Source: Tetramitus jugosus (taxonomy: Eukaryota > Protista > Heterolobosea). From it: a DNA stretch of 64,000 bases. The stretch covers positions 372,001-436,000 of the forward strand of contig OW569378.1 in NCBI GenBank assembly GCA_937625935.1, in the 5' to 3' direction. The notes beneath the pieces are model-generated. The model was not told the origin of the DNA, did not search any database, and was given only the letters and a program-made list of their open reading frames with translations. A program made the position numbers and the translations under genes. The stretch's first letter is position 1; every line of letters begins with the position of its first letter. This document shows positions 19,715 through 58,150 of this stretch, piece after piece.

Positions 19715-20719
19715 TTATTTATTAATCACATATTCAACAAGGTAGGGACGATGATCAGAGGCTTCTGTCACTGGAACAGATGCACGCACACAAGTCATCT
19801 TGTTGTTGAATTCACGTGGGAGCCACAATAGCTGATAATCAATTCTCTCATAGGGCTTCTGGCTGTTGAATGTGAAGCCATCAGATGCTTTACCTGATCC
19901 ACACATTTCCCACGTATCAATCATATTTGCCTCGTGCAATAAAATTTGAACTGCTTCACTGCTTGGCTCTGCATTGAAATCTCCACTGACAATAATTGGG
20001 ATGTTTGTCTCTTGGAGTGGAACGACAAGTCGATGTGCGAGCTGTCTGGCTTCCTCGGCTTGAACACCTTGCAGACCCAGATGAGTTGTCACGTACCAAA
20101 TGAACAGTGGTTCTTCAGCTTGCAACTGCACTCGAACAGCAAGAGCACCCTGGCAGAAATCATCGGGAGCATACTTGGCACAACGTTCGTCGTCACGAGA
20201 GCGACGATAGCTACGAAGTCCACCTGCTGATGAAGGCTTCTCATACTGCAGCATTCTGTGCTCAACAATAGGTAATCTACTCATGATTCCAATACCATAG
20301 GCACCACCTTGAAATGGTCTAAACTTTGCAAATTGAAAGTGAGGCATCTTTGTGGCAGAAGCCAACAGAGCAATCTGATCATCACCTGGATGTCTCTGTG
20401 TCATGTTGTCCACTTCTTGCAACGACACGAGTTCAAGCTCACCATGTACACTGGGAGAGGATGACTCACTAATCCTATTGATCGTATCGGCTTGTCTTGT
20501 CAGATTGTACACGTGATCAAATCCAGAGCCACTCTGGATGTTGTAGCTCATGATTCTAAAGGAATAAGGAGAGGCCGCACTGGCCGTGGAAGAAGGGCAA
20601 CACAACAGCAAAAGGGATGGTAGTAGCATGGTCAGTACGCTGCAGATTACAAGCCTCGACATTGCATGACTGGCCATTCTGGATGTGTGAGACATTGGGT
20701 GGGATTTTCTTTTTGTCAA
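19715..20719 (-). CDS. Secreted endonuclease/exonuclease/phosphatase (EEP) family hydrolase
   Basis: Hydrophobic signal region; MSYNI, LQEVD, THL, GDFN, RIDY and SDH motifs. Confidence 0.9.
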   Translation of the reverse strand: MTKRKSHPMSHTSRMASHAMSRLVICSVLTMLLPSLLLLCCPSSTASAASPYSFRIMSYNIQSGSGFDHVYNLTRQADTINRISESSSPSVHGELELVSLQEVDNMTQRHPGDDQIALLASATKMPHFQFAKFRPFQGGAYGIGIMSRLPIVEHRMLQYEKPSSAGGLRSYRRSRDDERCAKYAPDDFCQGALAVRVQLQAEEPLFIWYVTTHLGLQGVQAEEARQLAHRLVVPLQETNIPIIVSGDFNAEPSSEAVQILLHEANMIDTWEMCGSGKASDGFTFNSQKPYERIDYQLLWLPREFNNKMTCVRASVPVTEASDHRPYLVEYVINK

Positions 20720-20907
20720 GACCGTTTTGGTCGGGTTGGAGAAATGCTATTCCCCGTCTTCTCTTCCCCGACTAGAAGGTGAAGCTTCGGATATTTAAAA
20801 AATTGTAACCTGTCTCGCTGCAACCATTTCTTTGGGGGGCTTGCTGCCCAACACCCAATCGCAAACATCATCCCCATTCAAAAAAAGCTTTAAAGACCCT
20901 GATAATC

Positions 20908-21810
20908 ATGAGAGCTGTTACCCTAGTGTCCGTTTTGTTGTTGGCTCTTGTTGCCTTCACTGTCGCTCGTTTCCAACCAAGAACTCTTCCATATCGTCCA
21001 ACAAGAAGAGTCTTCAAGCCTGTCGTTGCTGCTGATTTGACTCAGTACAACTTTGACAAGACTGGATTGAACTTTTGGCAAGCCATTGACGAGTTCAAGA
21101 AGGCAAAGAAGGCCTATGATGAAATCAATAAGTCTTCTGCTGATGAGAGTGAATACTCATTCAACAAGTCTGGTTTGAACTTTTGGCAAGCTCTTGATGA
21201 GCTAAAGAAGGCAAAGAAGGCTTATGATGTGATCAACCGTGAAGAAGCAGAAGTTGCCTCTGACTTGGCTCAATACAGCTTTGACAAGTCTGGTTTGAAC
21301 TTTTGGCAAGCAATTGATGAACTCAAGAAGGCAAAGAATGCTTATGACACCATCAACAAGGTTCAAGATGATGAAGAAGACGAAGAAGAGGACTACTCCT
21401 TCAACAAGACTGGATTGAGCTTCTGGCAAGCAATTGATGAATTCAAGAAGGCAAAGAATGCCTACGACGAATTGAACACTGCCCAAGACGACGAAGAAGA
21501 CTATTCATTCAACAAGTCCGGATTGAACTTTTGGCAAGCAATTGACGAATTCAAGAAGGCAAAGAATGTTTATGATGAGTTGAACAAGGTTGAAGACGAT
21601 GAGGAAGAAGACTACTCCTTCAACAGATCTGGTTTGAACTTTTGGCAAGCCATCGATGAGCTCAAGAAGGCAAAGAACGTTTATGATGAATTGAACACTG
21701 CTCAAGACGACGACGAAGAAGACTACTCCTTCAACAAGTCCGGATTGAACTTTTGGCAAGCAATTGACGAATTCAAGAAGGCAAAGAAGGCTTATGACGA
21801 ATTGAACTAA
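20908..21810 (+). CDS. Secreted multi-repeat peptide precursor (7 x 28-aa cores, acidic spacers)
   Basis: Signal peptide MRAVTLVSVLLLALVAFTVA, basic Pro/Arg pro-segment, then seven cores of consensus YSFNKSGLNFWQAIDEFKKAK(K/N)AYDELN. Confidence 0.9.
   Translation: MRAVTLVSVLLLALVAFTVARFQPRTLPYRPTRRVFKPVVAADLTQYNFDKTGLNFWQAIDEFKKAKKAYDEINKSSADESEYSFNKSGLNFWQALDELKKAKKAYDVINREEAEVASDLAQYSFDKSGLNFWQAIDELKKAKNAYDTINKVQDDEEDEEEDYSFNKTGLSFWQAIDEFKKAKNAYDELNTAQDDEEDYSFNKSGLNFWQAIDEFKKAKNVYDELNKVEDDEEEDYSFNRSGLNFWQAIDELKKAKNVYDELNTAQDDDEEDYSFNKSGLNFWQAIDEFKKAKKAYDELN
21046..21807 (+). repeat. Coding tandem repeat, 7 units of about 105-120 bp
   Basis: Recurrent TGGCAAGC and AAGAAGGCAAAGAA blocks in all seven units; 84-nt cores with variable GA-rich spacers. 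Confidence 0.95.
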
Positions 21811-36577: not shown

Positions 36578-39500
36578 ATGAGTGATAGCACGAGTTCTAC
36601 TTCTTCTACCCAACAACAACCACAACAACAAACCGTTGTGGAAGAAGCAACAAGTCAACCACAAGTCAGCAACACTGAAACAAAATCACAAAAGCAACAA
36701 CAAAATCTGAAAGAACCGATTGCTGTATGTGTTGCCAATAGTGATAGTGGTGCTTGGTTTCACAAAACAAAATTTTTTGGATCTTTTCCAGCTCGATCCA
36801 ATCATTGGGTATGTGCCCCCGTGTTGTTGTTGTTGCTTGTTGTTGCTTGTTGTTGTGTTTGTTTTTTGTGTGGAACCAACCGCCTTTTTAGCTCTTTGGT
36901 GTTTTTACGAGTGTCAAAAGCTTTTGTTACTGTTTTAAAAAAAGATGTGCGCCAGTGTACTGACAGTGTTGATAATCAATGAATGAATATGAAATATTTT
37001 TTGTTTTGCTATCATTGTTCATTGTTTATTGTTTATTGTTGTTCATGACTGCGACGAAAAAGGGTCTCTCATTCTCTCACAACAAATTCCTGGTGCAAGG
37101 CGGCGTTTGCGACAACAAAAATCTCCATCGAACCATTTACGTTTTTGAGCGACAAGCGAACAATACATGGTTCAGCACGAGTGCACCTGTTCAGAATCCA
37201 CAAGACGCTCCTCCGCGCATCTGGAATCACACGGTCGTTTACTATCCGAAACAAAACTCCATTTATGTTTTTGGTGGCAGAAATCATTTACGATGCTTTC
37301 AAGAGACGTTTGTTTTGCAGTTGGATCCTGTTTGGTTGTGGTCAAAGATTATTTCTGTTCATAAGGTGAATCATCGATACAGTGTGCCTCTATCGACATC
37401 GACTGCGAATACTGCTTCGATGAATGGCAGCAATAATATTAATAATAACAAGTTGAGAATTCCGTGCAGGAGACATGATCATACGGCAGTGTTGATTGGC
37501 AATGAAATGGTTGTTTTTGGTGGAATGAGTGATCACAGTTTGAACAGGAGGGTGTTGAATGATGTTTGGGCGTTGGACTTGGATAATCACACGTGGAGAG
37601 ATGTGATTGTATCGGTGAAAAATGGTGTGCCTGTTGAGAGGTACTCTCATGCTGCTATTGCGTTGGACGATGGGAAGAGTATGATGATTTGGGGAGGTGT
37701 TTCGAAAACGGGTCACAAGTTGAACGATTGTTGGATATTTGATTTGGGATTTAAATCGTGGAGACAGGTCATTTTAACAGGTACGGCTCCTCAGGCGAGA
37801 GTGGATTGTCAACTTGTGAGTATTGGCAGTGGTTTGGTCATTGGTTTCGGAGGATATAGTAACATGCGGTATCACAAGGACTTTTTCGCGATTGATTTAG
37901 TCAAGAACCGATACATTGCGGTTGATGTCCCGAGAAAGGAGTTACCAAGTGCCAGAAAGGGTCATTCGTTGACTATGTTGCAAAAGAGTGGTTCATTTGA
38001 TAATGTTGTTGTCATGTTGGGTGGCAATTCGAGAAAGCGAGGAAGATTGGATGATATGTGGTCCATTGATGTTCAATTATTGAAGAATCGATTGCTCTAC
38101 ACTGGAAAGAATCTTGCTCAATCCCTCAGCGATCACAACGCAAAATATGACCGAATTACGAAGTGTATTGAAGAATTGGAGCACCACATGTCCAATCCTG
38201 AAATTGAATCCAAGAAGGAGTTGGTTCCAGTGAAGAATTTAGACAAGGGAGAGACAGTTGAGGTCGAATTCGAAGCCAATGAACTCACGGCACTGTACAT
38301 GGACCGAATGATTCTCGATACAGAGCGTAGAGATTTCAACAAGGCCATGGATGCACTGAAGAAGTTAAAGGACATTTCGAGCACTGATGTATCCTCGTTA
38401 GAGACAGCAGCACTCGTGTATTATCATTGTGGAGACCTTGATCAAGCAAGAGAGCACTTGGATCGTGTTGACCGAAACCAGTTGAGTGTCGAAGGTCACA
38501 TTCTATTGACTCAAGTATACTTGGCTTGTGGAAGCACGACCCAGGCAACCAATTGTGTCAAGGACTTGTTGGACTCGCGTGGCAAGCAATTAAAATCGAA
38601 TCAAGTTAGCGAACTGAGCGAGTGGAGAAATTATCTTTCAAAGCTCGGTACTCCAAACACCAGAGGTCGCAGAGGCACTATTCTAGGACCCGCTCCCCAT
38701 TCGAATCTAGCGACTACTCTGCCAGATCAAATGATTGCTTACACAGAGACGATTGACGACGCATTCTATGAAGCCGAGTTCGATGATGCAACAGAAGATA
38801 CAATGAATGACCAGACGGAAGCGGACCTGAGAACCTCTGTGCCTGACGATCAACCAAACCAACAGAACTCCCATGACATTATTATTGCAGGTGGTGCATC
38901 CTGTGGTTTGAAAACAATGTTACAAAACTGGAGAGCAGCATTAGTGCAGAGCGTCAGTCCAAACGAGTGTGAGCACTACCGATCCAAGATACGGAATCAA
39001 ACAGTGGATATACTTTTTGCTTGTGTTGATCTGATAGAAATGTTTAATGCGAGTATCGAGATACAGATGCGAGAGTCATTGGATATTGTTTTTAACCGCG
39101 AGCGAATGTTGTTTGAGCAGGCACAGGCCGAACGAATTCAAGCAATTCGAGACTTGAAGGAAAAGAACAGATCAGACTACACAGAAGATGATTTTGTGTT
39201 GGTTGGTACATTTTGTAGAGATCGTGCCGTTCGAACAGTCATCAAGTCTCTGTACGAAATTTTGAGCTACATGGATGAAAAACAGTTGTGTATCGAGCCT
39301 GTGTCCACACTTCTCACGAGTGATATTCACTATTACATGAATGAACAGAATGTAGCTCGTATAATATGTTCCGGTTCACTCTTTCCAATTATTGCCTCTG
39401 ATGTGCTTCGAATTGCTCATAAACAGCATTTCTTCTATCCGGCACATTTACATTCAGGGGAGGAAGAACAAGCATATGAATCAGACTATCCTATTCTAGA

Positions 39501-40149
39501 GTTGATGTACAAAAAGATTCCATACAACATTGTTTCGGTTCGAGATGTGCAGAGTGTATTTAATGTAGAGTCAGGTGAGAGCATCGCTGTTGATTTGCAT
39601 CAACGATTCCCTCATTTGAGTTGTGTTGTGCTCGTAGCCAACTTGGCAGACGTGTTTAGCAAGCACAACAGCTCACTGAATGAAGGAGAAGAAGAGTATG
39701 CTGTTCTGTCAGGAGGTGTCACCTACAATAAGAACAGCAGCTCTTCTATCGTTGCAAGTTTGAGATTATTCCATGCAATTTGCAATGACTTGGCATTGGC
39801 AGATAAGCCCGTAGTGATTTTGTTTACGCACTGCGATGAGTTCGCTAGAATGTGCAATAGTGTGGCAAAGGTGAACAGCCCTGGTGTTTATTCCTTGCAG
39901 AATGTGTTGCCAAAGTTCTATCTCCCAGCAGCAGACAGTGGTATCAGTTTAGGCAAGAGTGTGTCTGTCTTTTTGGAGAAGTGTTTCAATGACCTAAATG
40001 AGACCAACTCCAATTCGACACGAAGGTTGCATTTCCGTTATTTTGATAGCAATGAACAAGCTCAAGCCATGGCGATTTTCAAGTTTGTGGACAGTGTTGC
40101 GAATGCTGTTCGTGCACATAACATTTTGAAGGACATGAAAATGCTGTAA
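36578..40149 (+). CDS. Kelch-repeat + TPR + degenerate G-alpha-like domain fusion protein; two exons (intron 36809-37062)
   Basis: Kelch motifs (RRHDHT..VVFGG, RYSHAA..IWGG, RKGHS..MLGG), TPR-like helices, C-terminal G-alpha-like segments (SLRLFHAICN..KPVVILFTHCD). In-frame splice GTATGT..AAAG. Confidence 0.8.
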
Positions 40150-50278: not shown

Positions 50279-53200
50279 TTAGAATAGATAAACAGACTGC
50301 TTTTGTTTGTCTTGTTTCCACTTTGGCAACTTTGCAAAGGCTTCACGCGTCATCTCAAACACGATTCTGAACTCAAGGTCACTCAGATAGGTTTCCAGTA
50401 TTGTAGGATCAACACCTTTGGGCAGTGGATCTCTCAGTAATTCATCATACGAGAATGTTGTACGAGCCAACTCCTGCAACTTGTCACTTAACAACTCTAA
50501 TTTCGGTGTGGATTTCTTTCCCTTGTTATCTGATGAGTCGGCAGAACGATTGACTTGCTCTTGAATCTCCTTCATTAGTCGATCTCTGTATGGACCCCAA
50601 GATTGGAAGTGTGTTGTGAATTGAGCAGGTTCCTCACATGGTCTCACAATGAACATTCGTTTTTCAATGTCCTTTGGTCTATCTGGCTCATCTTTTAGCC
50701 CAGATTTGCATTGGGCATACTTGGCAGCAACTTCCATTGCCATTTTCTGTACGAAATGCATGGACGTTGTTCCAATCCACAAGAAAATCTCATTATCAAC
50801 ATCGAGCATCATGACATTAGAATTATCTAAGTCTTCTTGTGCCATGTTGTATACACGATCCACAACAACTGCTCCAGTCGCACCGTTGAAAATATAGAGT
50901 CGCTTGAGCTGTCGAACTCCCTGTTCGTCCATGATGGCTTTGTTTTGTCGTTTAAGTGCAATTCTGTCAATGGCATTAATGTTCATCAGCTTGTAGAATT
51001 CATCAGTCTCTTCACCTTGGTTAACTGTTTTGATTGATGGCGCGCGATCAACTATCTTCTTGATAAGATCTGTCGCAGCTGAATGCTCTGTTGGGTGACT
51101 GAATTTTCCCTTCCATATGAAAGCATTCTTCTGGTCGCTACTAATAATGACAGAAACATGATTCTGGTTGAGTTGATCCTTATTGACTTCATATGTCTCA
51201 ATTGCTCGCAACTTTGCATTTCTTAAATCTCTGTATTCACTGGAGAGTCTCACATCAAACATTCGAATCGGATTCTGCTTGAGTCGATTCACATAGTTGG
51301 CGTACTTCCCATTGTGGATGACGAGTTGATTCTTGAACAGTGCCAAGAAATGTTTGGTCTCGTGCTGCTGTGTAATACGGAGCTGAGGTGCACTTTCAAA
51401 CTCTGATGAAACATCAATAGTTAACAAAGCAGAAGCACCCTTCTCATTGATCGAACTATCTCTTCCCTGCCAGAAATAAACTAGATAATTGTCTTTGTTC
51501 GAAGTCTTGTACGATGTCATAATCACAAATGAATCACCACTGAAGAATTGACCATAGAGTGAATTAGGGTATGGTGTCTTCTCGAATCCTTCCACTCGCC
51601 AGACTGTAGTCACATTGGTCTCAGGACTTGGGTTTCCAAACATTGGATCATTTGGAGGCTCTAATCTCATCATTGATATTGGATCAATGACTTGTTGTAC
51701 TGCTCTTTGAGACACGTTGTTCTTACCCATCTTCTCTTGGTAGGCCTCCGAGCTGACGGCAATTGGCAGAACACCACCATAGTCTGACAATTTCTCTTTA
51801 AAGATCACGGGCTCACCATTTTCAATAACCTTTGTTGTGCTCGTCCATGTTGGTCTCCGCTCGCCCTGCTCCATTTTCATGGCAAACTTCTTGGCAAATT
51901 GTCTCTGCTCCTGCAATGATCCCTTACCTTCCCAGATGAATAATTCTGAGAAGCAATCAAGCAAGTAAACGTACTCACTCTTAAACAATGCCTTGGAGGG
52001 TTGCGATCCCTCATGGATCATCTTAACTTGTATCCTTCCCTTGACATCCGCTCCAGTCTTATTTGAGAGCAGATCGGTGGCTTGTAGTGATAACTTTTGT
52101 TGCTCCTTCTCTAAAATGTAACTAATTCTGTACAATTTGGTCTTGGAATCAATCCACTGTTCAAACTCTAGATCGTCTCCTCCCTGCTCTGCTGATCGAA
52201 CTGTCATGTTAGGTGGAGGAAGAGGTTGCTTCTTGTCCACAATCTTCAATTGCTTCTGAAGAATCAAGGACCAGAATTCTTGCTTTTCTGGTGTATTTTC
52301 ATCGTCCTTTTCATCAATGATGAACACCTTGGCATTTCCACCTCTTTCTTTGACACGAAGATTTGTACTGACATCAAGCCCTCTGGCCTTCTTGAACTTG
52401 GATGCCTTAGCTCCGTTCCATTGATAGATTACCTTTCCACAATCCAAGACGAACACATCTCCCGAATTAATGCTTTCGAACTCGATTGGGACAAGTCTAG
52501 ATCGAATTCTTTTCTTGCCCTTGATTTGAAGGAGCACCTTTTGCTGATTTTGCTTTACCTTAGTTGGATCTACTTGATTAGAGAACAGAGCATCCTCTTG
52601 TGCTTGGTTCTTTGGAACATCAGAGCCGGACAACAGTTTGACGACCACTGCCTCTCCATAAAGCTTACTGCCTGACATCCATTGAGCTCCTTCAGCACTC
52701 TCTCGTGTTGCGAATTTAATGTATCCCGTCTGAGAATTATTGTTCTCGTTCATCCATAATTTCAGTAACTCCACCTCACCAAACATGAGGAAAAGATCTA
52801 GGAAGTCCTTGTTTGATACCTTATGACTGACTGACTCAATCTTTAGATATCCTGGTTCACTTGAACGCTCCTTTGCCGCTGTTTGAGAAACCAACGTAAC
52901 AGAGATCTCGTGTCCATCAAGATTCATCATATCTAGACATAATGCCTGTTCAGCTGCGCTCATCTTCTTATAGGTGATGAATGCATGATCTTTGAACTTT
53001 CCAGTTCGTTGCAAATCGATCTTATCTATGACACCAAATACTTGGAAAGTGGAGCCAATATCATCTGCTGTTAAATTCTCTGAAATGGGATAAATATCAA
53101 TTTGACCGGGATCTTCTTCAACAGAACCCGATCCATCAATTGACTTTGATCTGGACAAAGATTTTCGTTTCTCTGATGGATCAGCCAATCCCATTGACTC

Positions 53201-55579
53201 GAGCAATGCTTCTTCAGAATCAGCCTCAACGGAATGAGCAGCTGCGAGTCCACATTTTTGCAGAATATAATCACACCACATATCCTTTTGTAGCTGTGAT
53301 GTACAAAGCAAATATTTCGTATATCCGTCCTTTTGTGTTTTGGTATACAACATTTTTAAGCATAATTCCTTTTCTTCACTGAGTAGTGTAATGCCAGGAG
53401 CTGTTGGTGATGGGATCAAGTTGACAAGCATGGGCAACTTGGATTTTCCGTTATCGATACCCAATCGAATGGACTCAACAGGAGAGAGTGCCCTCCGAGA
53501 AGCAAAAATGTACACAACTTCATCAAGTGCAACAAACCATCGCTTTCTCCAATAGGCAGGAATATCATCCGATGTCTCAGAAAGCTCCAAAATATAATCC
53601 TCAAGAGGCATGAACATCATTGTTGGCTCACTTAACTTCTTGTTTCTTCGGACAGCCTCCATCGATAGAATAAACTCTCGTTGAAGAGTCGACACCCACA
53701 GTTCTCTGTCATCCGGAGAGCTACATGCCACATATAGTACATATAATTGATTATGCATAGTAATCATAATCTCAAAGCATTGCTCATCAGAAAACTTTTC
53801 ATTTCTGAGCAGCTTGACCTCCTTGGCAGTACAGAATGAACCATCGAGCAAATTAATCTTGAGAAGATTGGTGTTCGAAAGAGATGTTGATGAAGAGTCT
53901 GATGGTTTCTGAGCCCGAACATTTGCTTCCTTTGTTGATATGTACAACATTTGAGAGTTGTCATGGCGACACATGAGTCCCATAAACACTTGAACCCATT
54001 TGTTGTTCGATTGAACAGGATCTAATATATTGACCCAGCTTCCAAGCGTAATTGCATTCGAGTCAGAACCATTGGTGGGACTAGATACTTGCGGAGAAGG
54101 TGTGTTAGAGAGACCGTCTCTCTTTGTCAAGTTGGCTTGAAGAGTATTCAAAGGTACTCGCTTCCTACCACCCTGATCCTCTGGAACATCAAAAACAGAT
54201 TTCATATCTGATGGTTGCAAACTCTTCAACTCTGGAGTCTTTGTTGCACCGTTGAACCATTCATCCGATGTCAACAATGGCTTATTAGACAAGATTGGTT
54301 GATAAATATCTTCTTGGAAGAGTGCTTCTCCTGTGGCTTGCTTTCTAGGTATGAATATCGAACATGTTTGAACAACATCCTTATTCAATACCATAAATCT
54401 TGCAATTTCATTCTTTCTCACATCGCAGAGTGTTTTCGGTAACATATTCAATCCTGTCATTGTTGTCTTCGTGTCAGTATAATCATTCATGGCGTGCAAA
54501 TATGGTGATTCGAAGGTATCAACCTCAAACACTCGGATCCTATTGTCTCCTCTTCCTGCCAAATAAATCAAGCTTGATCCCTCATCGACAAACGGAATGA
54601 GTTGAGTGCTGCTCGTTGTGTCGTCAGTGATGGTCTTCGTAGTCAAACTTCCTCGTTTCATTCCCTTACGCAAATCCCAAAGTGCATACTGACGCTGACC
54701 AGACGCGTTGAAACCCACTGTGAAAAATAGATCGGTAGAGCCCAACCACACACTTCTGAATCCCTTTTTACCCTCGTGAGCTTGTCCCTGAACGAACGCT
54801 ACTCGGCTCTTATCTCTCGGATCAAATATACGAACCATGGTATCACGACAACTCGTTAACAATGTATCGCCACCCCTCATATTCCAATCCATACTCGTCA
54901 CCATGGAGTCATCAAACGACTCTTTTGGTAGTGTGATACGACTCGTCTGTTGTTTCAAATCCCAAATTCGAACAGTGTTATCAAACGATGCACTCACTAC
55001 GGTCTCTGCTGCAAATTTGTGAAAATGAACGAGATGAGTCTTCTTTGTGTGCTCCGATAGCGTATGAATACTCACATCTTCACTATTGACCGCACTGCTA
55101 TTCACAATAGGAATACAGTGAATCTGAGGATTGACCTTTCGCGTTGCTTCCTCCAAACTAGGCATCTCAACCTTCCAAATCTTCACAGATCCATCTGCAC
55201 AAGCAGAAGCCAACATTTCTTGATCATTGTAGCGCGAATTGTACAAATGATTGAAAGCAATATCATGAATGAGTCCCGTGTGACCCGTGAGCAAAGGCGG
55301 AGAAGCATTTGCTTTTCTGGCTTGAATGTTATCGGGTATTCCAGAGTGACGAATCACAGTGATACCACAGTTGGTGGCCCACGGAAGAGCAAAGCAATTT
55401 TCAGTAGTACAAATACCATAGCTCTCAGCACTGATACTAGACTTGTGAATATTAAGATTTGTAAAGTGTAGTTCTCTCTTGCATGACTCACCAAACAAGT
55501 TTTTAAAGGTTGAGAACCTTTGACCGGTGAATTTGGAGCCAATATTGGACCCGAAGGAACTCTCTCTTCTGTGATGCAT
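50279..55579 (-). CDS. Villidin-like protein: coronin WD40 + PH domains + two RRMs + gelsolin repeats + villin headpiece
   Basis: Coronin motifs (FKNLFG, AHEGKKG, AGRGDNRIR, VRKNEIAR, LFQEDIY), PH (WRKRWFV), gelsolin (LLQIKGK, SGDVFVLD, YFWQG), headpiece (LPKWKQDKQKQSVYLF). First plausible ATG at 55579. Confidence 0.9.
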   Translation of the reverse strand: MHHRRESSFGSNIGSKFTGQRFSTFKNLFGESCKRELHFTNLNIHKSSISAESYGICTTENCFALPWATNCGITVIRHSGIPDNIQARKANASPPLLTGHTGLIHDIAFNHLYNSRYNDQEMLASACADGSVKIWKVEMPSLEEATRKVNPQIHCIPIVNSSAVNSEDVSIHTLSEHTKKTHLVHFHKFAAETVVSASFDNTVRIWDLKQQTSRITLPKESFDDSMVTSMDWNMRGGDTLLTSCRDTMVRIFDPRDKSRVAFVQGQAHEGKKGFRSVWLGSTDLFFTVGFNASGQRQYALWDLRKGMKRGSLTTKTITDDTTSSTQLIPFVDEGSSLIYLAGRGDNRIRVFEVDTFESPYLHAMNDYTDTKTTMTGLNMLPKTLCDVRKNEIARFMVLNKDVVQTCSIFIPRKQATGEALFQEDIYQPILSNKPLLTSDEWFNGATKTPELKSLQPSDMKSVFDVPEDQGGRKRVPLNTLQANLTKRDGLSNTPSPQVSSPTNGSDSNAITLGSWVNILDPVQSNNKWVQVFMGLMCRHDNSQMLYISTKEANVRAQKPSDSSSTSLSNTNLLKINLLDGSFCTAKEVKLLRNEKFSDEQCFEIMITMHNQLYVLYVACSSPDDRELWVSTLQREFILSMEAVRRNKKLSEPTMMFMPLEDYILELSETSDDIPAYWRKRWFVALDEVVYIFASRRALSPVESIRLGIDNGKSKLPMLVNLIPSPTAPGITLLSEEKELCLKMLYTKTQKDGYTKYLLCTSQLQKDMWCDYILQKCGLAAAHSVEADSEEALLESMGLADPSEKRKSLSRSKSIDGSGSVEEDPGQIDIYPISENLTADDIGSTFQVFGVIDKIDLQRTGKFKDHAFITYKKMSAAEQALCLDMMNLDGHEISVTLVSQTAAKERSSEPGYLKIESVSHKVSNKDFLDLFLMFGEVELLKLWMNENNNSQTGYIKFATRESAEGAQWMSGSKLYGEAVVVKLLSGSDVPKNQAQEDALFSNQVDPTKVKQNQQKVLLQIKGKKRIRSRLVPIEFESINSGDVFVLDCGKVIYQWNGAKASKFKKARGLDVSTNLRVKERGGNAKVFIIDEKDDENTPEKQEFWSLILQKQLKIVDKKQPLPPPNMTVRSAEQGGDDLEFEQWIDSKTKLYRISYILEKEQQKLSLQATDLLSNKTGADVKGRIQVKMIHEGSQPSKALFKSEYVYLLDCFSELFIWEGKGSLQEQRQFAKKFAMKMEQGERRPTWTSTTKVIENGEPVIFKEKLSDYGGVLPIAVSSEAYQEKMGKNNVSQRAVQQVIDPISMMRLEPPNDPMFGNPSPETNVTTVWRVEGFEKTPYPNSLYGQFFSGDSFVIMTSYKTSNKDNYLVYFWQGRDSSINEKGASALLTIDVSSEFESAPQLRITQQHETKHFLALFKNQLVIHNGKYANYVNRLKQNPIRMFDVRLSSEYRDLRNAKLRAIETYEVNKDQLNQNHVSVIISSDQKNAFIWKGKFSHPTEHSAATDLIKKIVDRAPSIKTVNQGEETDEFYKLMNINAIDRIALKRQNKAIMDEQGVRQLKRLYIFNGATGAVVVDRVYNMAQEDLDNSNVMMLDVDNEIFLWIGTTSMHFVQKMAMEVAAKYAQCKSGLKDEPDRPKDIEKRMFIVRPCEEPAQFTTHFQSWGPYRDRLMKEIQEQVNRSADSSDNKGKKSTPKLELLSDKLQELARTTFSYDELLRDPLPKGVDPTILETYLSDLEFRIVFEMTREAFAKLPKWKQDKQKQSVYLF

Positions 55580-56002
55580 CTGATGGAGCTGAGTGTCTGT
55601 GGGTTTTTGTCGGCAGGAGAAGCAAAGTGTGATCTTTTTTTGATGTTTCTTGACTTGTCGCCAGCTCGGCGAGAATCTTCGTCCAGGCTTTTTTGACGCG
55701 TGACATGAATTTACTCCGGTAGAACGGTGAATATCCTTTGCTTTTACTTCAAATTTATCATGGAAGCTTCTGGTGTGTCCATCTATTTTTTGAGAGAGAG
55801 TTCCAACAGGCTTCCTCACAAGCAAGTTCAAGACTTTGGATAGACTTTGCAGGAGAACATTGGAATCAAGTTGTTCGCTGGCGGTTTTCTTTTTATTGCG
55901 TCGGGGCTAGAGCGCATTCGAAAATTCGAAATCGAATTTGTGCGCACTGGACCAAAAAGTTTTGTGGCGCAAACAAAAAACGACACACCCACAGCAGCTC
56001 AC

Positions 56003-58150
56003 ATGAACACGCCAACTACTCATCAACTGCACCACTATAGTGGTGGCAACAATAGCAGCAGCATGTTCCACGAATATGATCAAAGTGATGATCTCTTCAA
56101 CGACTCTTACCATCACGATGGCAACAATGACAACCATCAATCCTCTCAACAACAACAACAACAACAGCAACAACAAAAGCAAAAGAGAAGAAGACCAGTG
56201 TTCGTAAGCAGAGCTTGCACCAATTGTAGAAAAGCTCACACAAAGTGCGACGAACAAAAACCATGCTCGCGTTGTGTTCGATTAGGTCTCTCTGACACGT
56301 GTCATATGGCAGAGCTTCAAAAGAGAGGAAGAAAACGAAAGACTGAACAGCAACAAGACTCTGATGAGATTGTTTCAAATGAGAGACAAGTAAACAAACA
56401 AGTGCAGCATCAACATTATCAACAAGGTGCAGAAGAGAGTCATCAAAAGAGAGTGAGACATGATGAGTTTGGTAAGGAGATTATGGGCGCTGCCACTCAG
56501 TCCTTGCTCAATTTTGAGCAAAATCCATTTGATTTCGATGTTTTGATGGGTAATCACTATCAACACCAACAACACCAACAACATCAGCAACAACCACAAG
56601 CACAATATCAACAACAACCGATTGCAACAACAGCAGCAACCATGAATAACAACAACAATATGAGTGCCATGTTACCACAACAACAACAACAAATGATGTT
56701 TCAACCACGACCAGTATCTGCTGTCAATGACCAATCCTTGTCCTCGGTTGCTTCATTGGATCATTCTCCATTGAATCAACATCTTCACAACAACAACAAC
56801 AACAGTAACAATAATATTATTGCTCATGCAACAATGATGAATAACAATCATGGTAATAACAGTGATGATGATGCAGATGAATTGTTGGAACCGTTTGTGA
56901 TTGATGACTTTTTCCCTCTGGGTCAAAACGGTCACATCACCACAACTGCTACTCCAACTGGTCCTACGACTGCACAACATCATCAACAACAACAACAACA
57001 ATCAATGGACCCTACCAACAATAACAATAACTCTCCAACAACGAATCATGTCTATGACCACAATTATGCCAATTTTTTGCTGTCTGCCAATTTACCCAAT
57101 TTGGCTGCACTCTGCCCTAGTGCGGCCGCTGTTGCAGCACCTGTGATTTGTGATCAGTTGAGACATCAAGCCCTTGTACAACAACACCAGCAGCAACAAC
57201 AGCAACAACAAACTCATATCATTCAGCAACAAGCTGTTCAATTGGCTCAACAACAACAGTTGTTGCATTTATTGGCACAAAAAGTGTCACAATCACCTGT
57301 GATGGATGTGAGTACAAGCAGTAGTGGTAGTAATAGTGGTCTTTTGGCTCCACAACAGCAACAACTACCACAAGCTATGCATCAACAACAGCAGCAACAG
57401 CAGAATATGTCCATGAGTCACTTGTTGACAACACCAGTGTCTCCTGTTCATTCTCCATCGTACTTTGGTGCTAGTTCTCTAGATTTTGACTCATTGGAGC
57501 ATCAATACTCGTCACCTACGACATCAACTAGTGATTATCGTAGCAGTGTCGATGGTTCATCCAACAACACATCTTCTTCATCCCTCTCAGAAGAGGACAG
57601 TCTCAGAGAACAAGTCAGACGGTTGCAACTAGAGAATGAAAAGTTGAAGAACATGATGGTCGTCAACAATCAACCTACTGCCACTGCCGTTGCGAATACA
57701 GCTCCTCAGCAGAGCACAGATTACCTAGAGTCCATTCCATCACACATCAAGAGCAAGACACGATTCGAAAATCAATACCTGAGATTCAATGAAGGTGAAG
57801 AAGAAGTCGGTCTGATCGTATCTGCTAGAGATGGAACCATTATTAGCATGAATGAGGTCATGAGAGATCTATTAGGGTATTCTTCTGAGGAGATGCGCAC
57901 TGTTGTGAACAATTGGGGACAGATTCTAGATAAAGACTTTTGGCCAAAGCAGCTTCAATGGGCTGAGAAGAACGTATTCAACATGGAAGAAAATGCCGAA
58001 TTGTCCGATGTGGTCTTCCAGAAGAAGGGTGCCAGTGACCCTCCTAAAGAAAGTGATTTGATTCGACCTAAGGCCTTCCAGACTAGATTCTGCTATGATT
58101 GCACATCAAGAAGTCTTTTGTTCTCGATTACAAAGGTGTATCTAAAGTAG
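56003..58150 (+). CDS. Zn2Cys6 (GAL4-type) transcription factor with poly-Q region, zipper and C-terminal PAS-like domain
   Basis: ACTNCRKAHTKCDEQKPCSRCVRLGLSDTC; LREQVRRLQLENEKLK; DGTIISMNEVMRDLLGYSSEEM. Confidence 0.9.
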   Translation: MNTPTTHQLHHYSGGNNSSSMFHEYDQSDDLFNDSYHHDGNNDNHQSSQQQQQQQQQQKQKRRRPVFVSRACTNCRKAHTKCDEQKPCSRCVRLGLSDTCHMAELQKRGRKRKTEQQQDSDEIVSNERQVNKQVQHQHYQQGAEESHQKRVRHDEFGKEIMGAATQSLLNFEQNPFDFDVLMGNHYQHQQHQQHQQQPQAQYQQQPIATTAATMNNNNNMSAMLPQQQQQMMFQPRPVSAVNDQSLSSVASLDHSPLNQHLHNNNNNSNNNIIAHATMMNNNHGNNSDDDADELLEPFVIDDFFPLGQNGHITTTATPTGPTTAQHHQQQQQQSMDPTNNNNNSPTTNHVYDHNYANFLLSANLPNLAALCPSAAAVAAPVICDQLRHQALVQQHQQQQQQQQTHIIQQQAVQLAQQQQLLHLLAQKVSQSPVMDVSTSSSGSNSGLLAPQQQQLPQAMHQQQQQQQNMSMSHLLTTPVSPVHSPSYFGASSLDFDSLEHQYSSPTTSTSDYRSSVDGSSNNTSSSSLSEEDSLREQVRRLQLENEKLKNMMVVNNQPTATAVANTAPQQSTDYLESIPSHIKSKTRFENQYLRFNEGEEEVGLIVSARDGTIISMNEVMRDLLGYSSEEMRTVVNNWGQILDKDFWPKQLQWAEKNVFNMEENAELSDVVFQKKGASDPPKESDLIRPKAFQTRFCYDCTSRSLLFSITKVYLK

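Follow-up and report, generated by a model that had tools for sequence, protein, structure and literature searches.

A seven-core secretory-type polyprotein of Tetramitus jugosus as a candidate precursor of Asp-cut peptides

Multi-copy precursors of linear peptides are textbook knowledge in animals and fungi. In the literature that we searched, heterolobosean multi-peptide precursors are of the saposin type only, and we found no description of peptides like those considered here in the literature on Tetramitus. We wondered what use a soil amoeba might make of a gene encoding a putative signal peptide followed by seven near-copies of a 28-residue unit. The organism, the heterolobosean T. jugosus CCAP 1588/3C, is a bacterivore that forms cysts and flagellates (PMC11106597), and the protist source supposed when the gene was noticed is correct. 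The gene lies on contig 35 of the 26,350,207-bp T. jugosus assembly, in which it is present as a single copy. We analyzed the 64,000 nucleotides around it (the window; positions below are counted from its first letter). We tentatively favor, at somewhat less than even confidence, the view that the gene encodes a precursor of Asp-cut, acid-activated antibacterial peptides.

Layout of the precursor gene

The features of the gene are as follows.

20877-20907, plus strand: short 5' leader of the transcript, approximate (RNA-run contigs start at 20877 in run X10 and at 20881 in run X12)
20908-21810, plus strand: precursor gene, 300 aa, intronless, single copy (intact ORF and RNA contigs)
20908-20967, plus strand: signal peptide, aa 1-20, predicted cut after Ala20 (sequence inspection and alignment)
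20968-21036, plus strand: Pro/Arg-rich lead cassette, aa 21-43, with AD at its end (comparison with the contig-42 cassettes)
21046-21129, plus strand: core 1, aa 47-74, charge 0
21130-21153, plus strand: spacer 1, AD site (Asp79)
21154-21237, plus strand: core 2, aa 83-110, charge +2
21238-21273, plus strand: spacer 2, SD site (Asp119)
21274-21357, plus strand: core 3, aa 123-150, charge 0
21358-21393, plus strand: spacer 3, a long acidic run nearly identical in make-up to the acidic run preceding the Gly-rich tail of a contig-43 precursor
21394-21477, plus strand: core 4, aa 163-190, charge 0
21478-21501, plus strand: spacer 4, QDD site
21502-21585, plus strand: core 5, aa 199-226, charge 0; strains L007 and L008 have D15G
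21586-21612, plus strand: spacer 5, EDD site; other strains lack one codon
21613-21696, plus strand: core 6, aa 236-263, charge 0
21697-21723, plus strand: spacer 6, QDD site; other strains have one extra codon
21724-21807, plus strand: core 7, aa 273-300, charge +1, abutting the stop codon; predicted single helix

The RNA contigs place the transcript start only approximately, and the relative P0001 (see below) has a comparable 5' leader of 26 nt. The contig starts rule out upstream in-frame TTG starts, and no intron joint was seen in the RNA contigs. Opposite-strand ORFs over the precursor are shadows.

The original prediction had described a signal peptide, a basic pro-segment and seven 28-aa cores separated by variable spacers. 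All of these were borne out, and the spacers that it quoted are present. The cores are exactly 28 aa long, starting at aa 47, 83, 123, 163, 199, 236 and 273, while the spacers vary from 8 to 12 aa. All seven start with Tyr and carry Asn as residue 28, and the last Asn directly precedes the stop codon. The acidic character ascribed to the spacers holds in general, but two of them finish LTQ or LAQ and are non-acidic at the end. TRF returned the core array with a period of 111 and a score of 644; the cores differ mutually by 6-18 of 84 nt. The whole 33-kDa precursor has a net charge of about -21 and no Cys, and its single RR (aa 33-34) lies inside the lead segment.

All seven cores are retained in other T. 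jugosus strains, represented by two metagenome contigs; the differences there are indels of one codon in the acidic spacers, one substitution each in a spacer and in a core, and silent changes. In run X12 the spacers are arranged differently or there is an additional unit ahead of core 6. Between window positions 21274 and 21723 two types of spacer, KV-x-DD and TAQDD, alternate, which hints at duplication of a two-unit block.

Conserved cores in rearranged relatives

We sought homologues of the core by an exhaustive profile search and two word searches. Two true relatives, both environmental, were present in the databases searched: P0001, a protein of 294 aa from three Logan runs, and P0002, one of 252 aa from a JGI contig. 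The second word search returned only these two. Prokaryotic genomes and viral contigs held no relatives, a search for fragments of 60-190 aa gave none, and no named Naegleria or other annotated protein was among the matches. Rows P0003-P0012 of the profile search were rejected as chance hits, the three inspected being repeat proteins of TPR-like, Ig-like and other kinds. The likely source of P0002 is another heterolobosean, because P0002 adjoins a UVSSA gene that is 43% identical to its T. jugosus counterpart; the latter is located on the same chromosome as the precursor, 350 kb away.

Both relatives have a signal peptide (hydrophobic aa 4-19 in the T. jugosus precursor, with an A-x-A-like site by inspection), a basic or Pro-rich lead and repeated cores, and core number and order differ. 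P0001 combines four cores of the canonical kind with two others (aa 58 and 182; L003) that form a second type; these are shorter and more cationic and share the K-x-G-x-x-F-W head with the canonical ones. P0002 carries four cores and a cationic insert. This insert (aa 68-118; L006) is located between cores, has a charge of +8 and is amphipathic with a moment of 0.62; it loosely echoes the core start (NSFEK) and is without a match in the T. jugosus genome.

Core identity between species is 65-72% (about 70%), and dN/dS of the cores ranges from 0.07 to 0.18 at a dS of 0.5-2.8, that is, up to saturation. Ten columns are invariant in 15 cores (Y1, F3, G7, L8, F10, E16, A20, K21, Y24 and D25), and spacers cannot be aligned between species. 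These comparisons indicate strong purifying selection on the cores, and conserved modules, free spacers and cassette shuffling together represent, as far as alignments can tell, the signature of a multi-peptide precursor. We infer that the precursor is secreted, and we consider it quite probable that it is cleaved into peptides.

Structure predictions were compared with this view. With a three-sequence alignment, which is a weak basis, AlphaFold placed seven separate helices without packing (pLDDT 35, pTM 0.17); core 7 by itself was modeled as a helix with a pLDDT of 78. Fold searches with the models found generic helices only (best Atlas TM 0.30), and a model this weak cannot exclude a fold. 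The PDB gave nothing specific by sequence or by fold, and Pfam had no single-stretch match to the precursor or the cores; apparent Pfam matches to PqqD, RGS and others were summed weak scores across the repeats, with no passing stretch. Thus none of the structural repeat families searched for in Pfam and the PDB fits the core. The nearest ESM Atlas cluster by features consists of apidaecin precursors (0.78), which is under the Atlas's own threshold and a lead only.

The protein might also act uncut or partly cut, as a beads-on-a-string lipid-binding, surfactant, cell-coat or cyst-wall protein. Its helices, which have aromatics in heptad position a and Ala in position d, would form bundles or rest on lipid, with Ca2+ bound by the acidic spacers; in a variant of this idea, any pieces released would be surface-active like Ustilago Rep1. 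Neutral helices carrying both charges and an abundant transcript would suit such a protein, as would the heptad pattern of aromatics at 10, 17 and 24 (F10/F17/Y24) and Ala/Leu at A13/A20/L27, which could allow the helices to bundle, and the N-glycosylation sequon at position 4 of five cores. We nevertheless regard an uncut protein as unlikely: the relatives vary freely in spacer length, core number and cassette order, the position-fixed Asp motif described below is common to clearly modular polyproteins, and the weakly founded AlphaFold helices stay separate and unpacked. The multi-core precursor of the original prediction is therefore the part of it that stands, on conserved cores with scrambled spacers, mixed cassettes in the relatives and the lack of a predicted packed fold, of a fitting repeat family and of a detectable kexin; its weak part is the proposed legumain cut after Asn.

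Asp delimiters and candidate proteases

Three sister genes were located in T. jugosus by DNA pattern, one in L054 and two in L055. The first (L054:3166-4191, contig 42 at about 265.2-266.2 kb, plus strand) encodes a secreted 341-aa polyprotein with nine Pro/Arg/Trp-rich cassettes of 17-24 aa ended by [FLY]SD, followed by an acidic run and a Gly-rich tail. The other two (L055:2665-3339 and L055:4108-4908, contig 43 near 73.2-75.4 kb) form a tandem pair built on the same plan, with SD-ended Pro/Arg/Tyr-rich cassettes and Gly-rich tails whose last residue is aromatic. Cassettes of the sisters are about 17-25 aa long, and Pfam had no match to these proteins. We take their Pro/Arg-rich and Gly-rich cargoes to resemble insect apidaecins and attacins.

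Several features tie the seven-core precursor to these sisters. The signal peptides are near-identical in style in the alignment, and BLASTP of precursor aa 1-44 against the contig-42 polyprotein gave an E value of 8e-7. The lead of the precursor ends in PVVAAD where the sister polyproteins have PVVYSD, PHSD is common to P0001 and the contig-42 polyprotein, and spacer 3 nearly matches the acidic run ahead of the contig-43 tail. The Asp motif of the precursor spacers matches the [FLY]SD delimiters of all three sisters. Similar signal peptides, a basic lead, SD-ended cassettes and an acidic run followed by an aromatic residue are thus common to both, whereas the cargo of the sisters consists of Pro/Arg/Trp-rich cassettes and a Gly-rich tail. 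Judged by these likenesses, the precursor belongs to a T. jugosus polyprotein set with a common signal peptide and Asp delimiters. The lead cassette is possibly a peptide in its own right, given its likeness to the Pro/Arg-rich, SD-ended cassettes of contig 42.

The delimiter is also evident within the precursor family. Of 15 distinct spacers, 13 have an Asp at -4 or -5 relative to the core, compared with a mean of 4.5 in shuffles (p<1e-4), and eight have it as [SA]D, compared with a mean of 0.8 (p<1e-4), although these p values overstate independence since the spacers are related through duplication. [SAD]D is found inside none of 17 cores, and no piece obtained by splitting at [SA]D/xDD sites contains more than one core. 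In P0002 the first core is without the Asp motif. A pattern search for [SA]DE triplets gave none, L060 and L002 being chance matches.

Cleavage by legumain after Asn28, releasing exact Tyr-to-Asn membrane-active 28-mers, had been the original proposal. Asn ends all seven T. jugosus cores, the last at the stop codon, and the genome has two legumain genes, one with a visible signal peptide (a third C13 match is probably GPI8). But position 28 is Asn in only 11 of 15 cores and in one of the four of P0002, and neither relative terminates at Asn. Every T. jugosus core moreover holds two or three internal Asn open to the same attack, of which those at position 4 may be glycan-shielded, and the release of the Tyr end is left unexplained. 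Because Asn28 is not kept in the relatives and internal Asn occur in every T. jugosus core, the Asn rule is weak and we consider this route very unlikely. The conserved spacer Asp, as [SA]D or xDD, appears to be the better candidate cut site.

As had been predicted, processing is unlikely to be of the classical Kex2 type: no KR or RR flanks any core and no kexin was found in the genome. The kexin/furin P-domain PF01483 had no match in the T. jugosus genome with a first-pass filter that could miss one. There were 11 S8 protease matches, of which the best kexin candidate resembles bacterial subtilisins and none shows what we take to be the kexin-type catalytic motif. Legumain cleaves after Asp below pH 4 (PMC9788469), and phytaspases, which are plant subtilases, process peptide hormone precursors at Asp (PMC6043521). 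As both can cut at Asp, either enzyme class could serve. Cleavage after Asp would leave three or four variable residues before Tyr1 and several past the helix, so that either exopeptidase trimming would be needed or the products would be 32-40 aa long.

If the Asp rule holds, it represents a processing code that Kex2-based mining pipelines miss, and the products of several other T. jugosus polyproteins become predictable. Precursors of this type are known as such; the core family and the Asp-delimited grammar appear to be undescribed. The original prediction drew a parallel to prepromagainin, Ece1/candidalysin, Rep1 and fungal RiPP precursors. Its plan does work like those of spider linear-peptide precursors, fungal KEPs and apidaecin or magainin precursors, but it lacks the sites that define each of these groups and belongs to none of them. 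Like the fungal KEPs (Ece1/candidalysin, Rep1, alpha-factor), it is a secretory-type precursor with a signal peptide and repeated cores leading to linear peptides (PMC7329392), but it has no KR/RR at the cores, no kexin was found in the genome and its host is not a fungus. In contrast to ustiloxin-type multi-core fungal RiPPs, no DUF3328 or tailoring gene is present among 30 window ORFs, and in contrast to magainin-type precursors, its cores carry a charge of 0 to +2 and a moment (0.30-0.41) within that of shuffles.

The complex precursors of spider venoms, which yield linear peptides such as cupiennins and lycosins, also combine a signal peptide, a pro-region and many linear helical peptides with anionic linkers of variable length and very high expression (PMC8290080). 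Their linkers start and end with Arg (iPQM/PQM; PMC8290080). The T. jugosus spacers lack this Arg-bounded motif (one starts with Arg, none ends with it) and have a conserved Asp instead, and the cores are near-neutral and conserved rather than strongly cationic and hypervariable, with no sequence similarity. Apidaecin precursors (PF00807) likewise have tandem copies with acidic spacers, and the lead and the contig-42 cassettes are Pro/Arg-rich as well, but the T. jugosus cores are predicted to be helical and are Pro-free, have no Pfam match and lack a dibasic site per unit. Systemin and phytosulfokine, plant hormones processed by phytaspases, resemble the proposed scheme in a non-kexin cut after Asp and possible trimming (PMC6043521); they are mostly single-core and unrelated in sequence, and the T. 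jugosus proteases named above are candidates.

Possible roles, expression and genomic setting

How might such a peptide be useful to a bacterivore? In the reading that we tentatively favor, an abundant secretory-pathway polyprotein would be cut C-terminal to Asp at the spacer [SA]D/xDD sites, by legumain at low pH or by an Asp-specific subtilase. Trimming by exopeptidases would then yield a conserved peptide, about 28-36 aa long and in seven copies, consisting of a YSF-x-K-x-GL head and a helix of 18-20 aa. The acidic spacers would hold the precursor, with its net charge of about -21, inert. The peptide would act in or near the food vacuole against ingested bacteria, and acid pH would be the switch, as the peptide is predicted to carry about +1.5 to +3 at pH 4.5 instead of about 0. 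We would expect it to self-associate or to bind a defined target, and not to behave like a classical cationic detergent.

The physical properties of the cores bear on the last point. Core charges 1-7 are 0, +2, 0, 0, 0, 0 and +1, in agreement with the near-neutral cores and the value of about +1 for the last core given at the outset; cores of the relatives are in part +2 to +4. The amphipathicity proposed for the core helix is moderate and had been overstated: the hydrophobic moment of the 18-residue helix is 0.30-0.41 and does not exceed that of shuffles (p 0.11-0.32). The value for the first 11 residues is 0.6 (p about 0.07), and Ala13 and Ala20 make for a narrow apolar face, which also contains the invariant Lys21. 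Given their near neutrality and merely moderate amphipathicity, the cores are doubtful candidates for lysis of the classical cationic kind.

Provided that the precursor is cleaved, we consider an antibacterial role slightly better than an even prospect. It is the membership in a polyprotein set with AMP-like cargoes that makes the peptide most likely antibacterial in or near the food vacuole. In addition to this common grammar we counted the bacterivorous host, the apparent abundance, the cationic insert of P0002 and the predicted gain of charge at vacuolar pH. A multi-peptide antibacterial precursor is also known from the related Naegleria (PMC6723116). Naegleriapores A and B of Naegleria fowleri similarly derive from a heterolobosean pre-pro-multipeptide precursor, are proposed to kill ingested bacteria and stand in a non-Kex2 context (PMC6723116, PMC5850478). 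The T. jugosus precursor, with no Cys and no saposin match in Pfam, lacks the six-Cys saposin domain of naegleriapores and amoebapores. Naegleriapores are disulfide-bonded saposin-like domains. On the other side, near-neutral cores with a full-length moment within shuffles are unlike typical lytic peptides. The polar residues E16, K21 and D25 are conserved over a distance at which UVSSA is 43% identical, which suggests a specific partner, as for a hormone; peptides that lyse non-specifically do not usually keep polar residues in this way.

A peptide released by the same processing might accordingly be a signal, for encystment, excystment, the flagellate switch, mating or density, with the conserved aromatic N-terminal head activating a receptor while the helix docks, as in secretin-type hormones, and with seven copies amplifying the output as in yeast alpha-factor. 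We know of no peptide signal in the heterolobosean lineage and think this role rather unlikely, even though strong purifying selection with invariant polar residues, near-neutral charge with a modest moment and a single-copy gene without a diversified family would all fit, the cores are more conserved than the neighboring DNA-repair protein UVSSA, and plants have Asp-flanked peptide hormones (PMC6043521). RNA levels that appear high in several unrelated samples, the grammar common to AMP-like polyproteins and the cationic insert of P0002 speak against it. Tyr1, following acidic residues, could be sulfated, but P0002 has lost the acidic residue that precedes it, as have cores 1 and 3. A broader formulation, to which we give a similarly low weight, is that Tetramitus-like amoebae have a kexin-independent, Asp-directed polyprotein platform that evolved independently of animal, fungal and plant systems and makes the conserved 28-mer as a receptor- or target-specific ligand, either a peptide signal or a target-specific antibacterial of a discoban protist. 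The candidate 28-mer is synthesizable and its source is a culturable, harmless soil amoeba with a finished genome, allowing a precise and cheap test. Each outcome would be of use: one would provide a new antibacterial scaffold that is switched by acid and stems from a predator of bacteria, the other a peptide signal.

The apparent abundance used in the antibacterial reading comes from public RNA data. Twenty runs from 15 studies contain the stretch; many hold about half of its words, a share consistent with the ORF by itself. In an oligo-dT metatranscriptome the contig covering 20877-21575 has a depth of 141 versus 2-9 for neighbor contigs, an indication of strong expression for which contig depth is a poor measure; in another run only the precursor ORF was assembled. 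Codon use, with AAG for all Lys, is nearer to that of PDI and the sister polyproteins than to that of the neighbor genes. Runs X10 and X12-X18, labeled as seven other organisms, contain the precursor gene, probably through Tetramitus contamination, and the gene could be a sensitive marker of such contamination.

Around the precursor lie housekeeping genes together with a gene of the HDAC family, one for an EEP hydrolase and one for a CH-domain protein. Pfam detected no tailoring gene, DUF3328 or other, among the 30 window ORFs, a set that covers ORFs below about 130 aa and split genes in part. A functional cluster with the HDAC-family, EEP and CH-domain neighbors was rejected on the lack of tailoring enzymes, the far lower neighbor depth in the oligo-dT run and the location of P0002 beside UVSSA instead. 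The EEP-family hydrolase (19715-20719, minus strand) has a signal-peptide-like start and stands head to head with the precursor, about 250 bp apart; RNA-run contig X4 covers both genes. Elsewhere in the window, 36979-40149 (plus strand) is a 1056-aa ORF with a Kelch-repeat propeller fused to a G-alpha-like domain, 50279-55831 (minus strand) encodes an 1850-aa villidin-like protein with coronin-like WD40, PH, RRM, gelsolin repeats and a villin headpiece, and 55847-58150 (plus strand) encodes a heterolobosean protein with a fungal-type Zn2Cys6 cluster domain.
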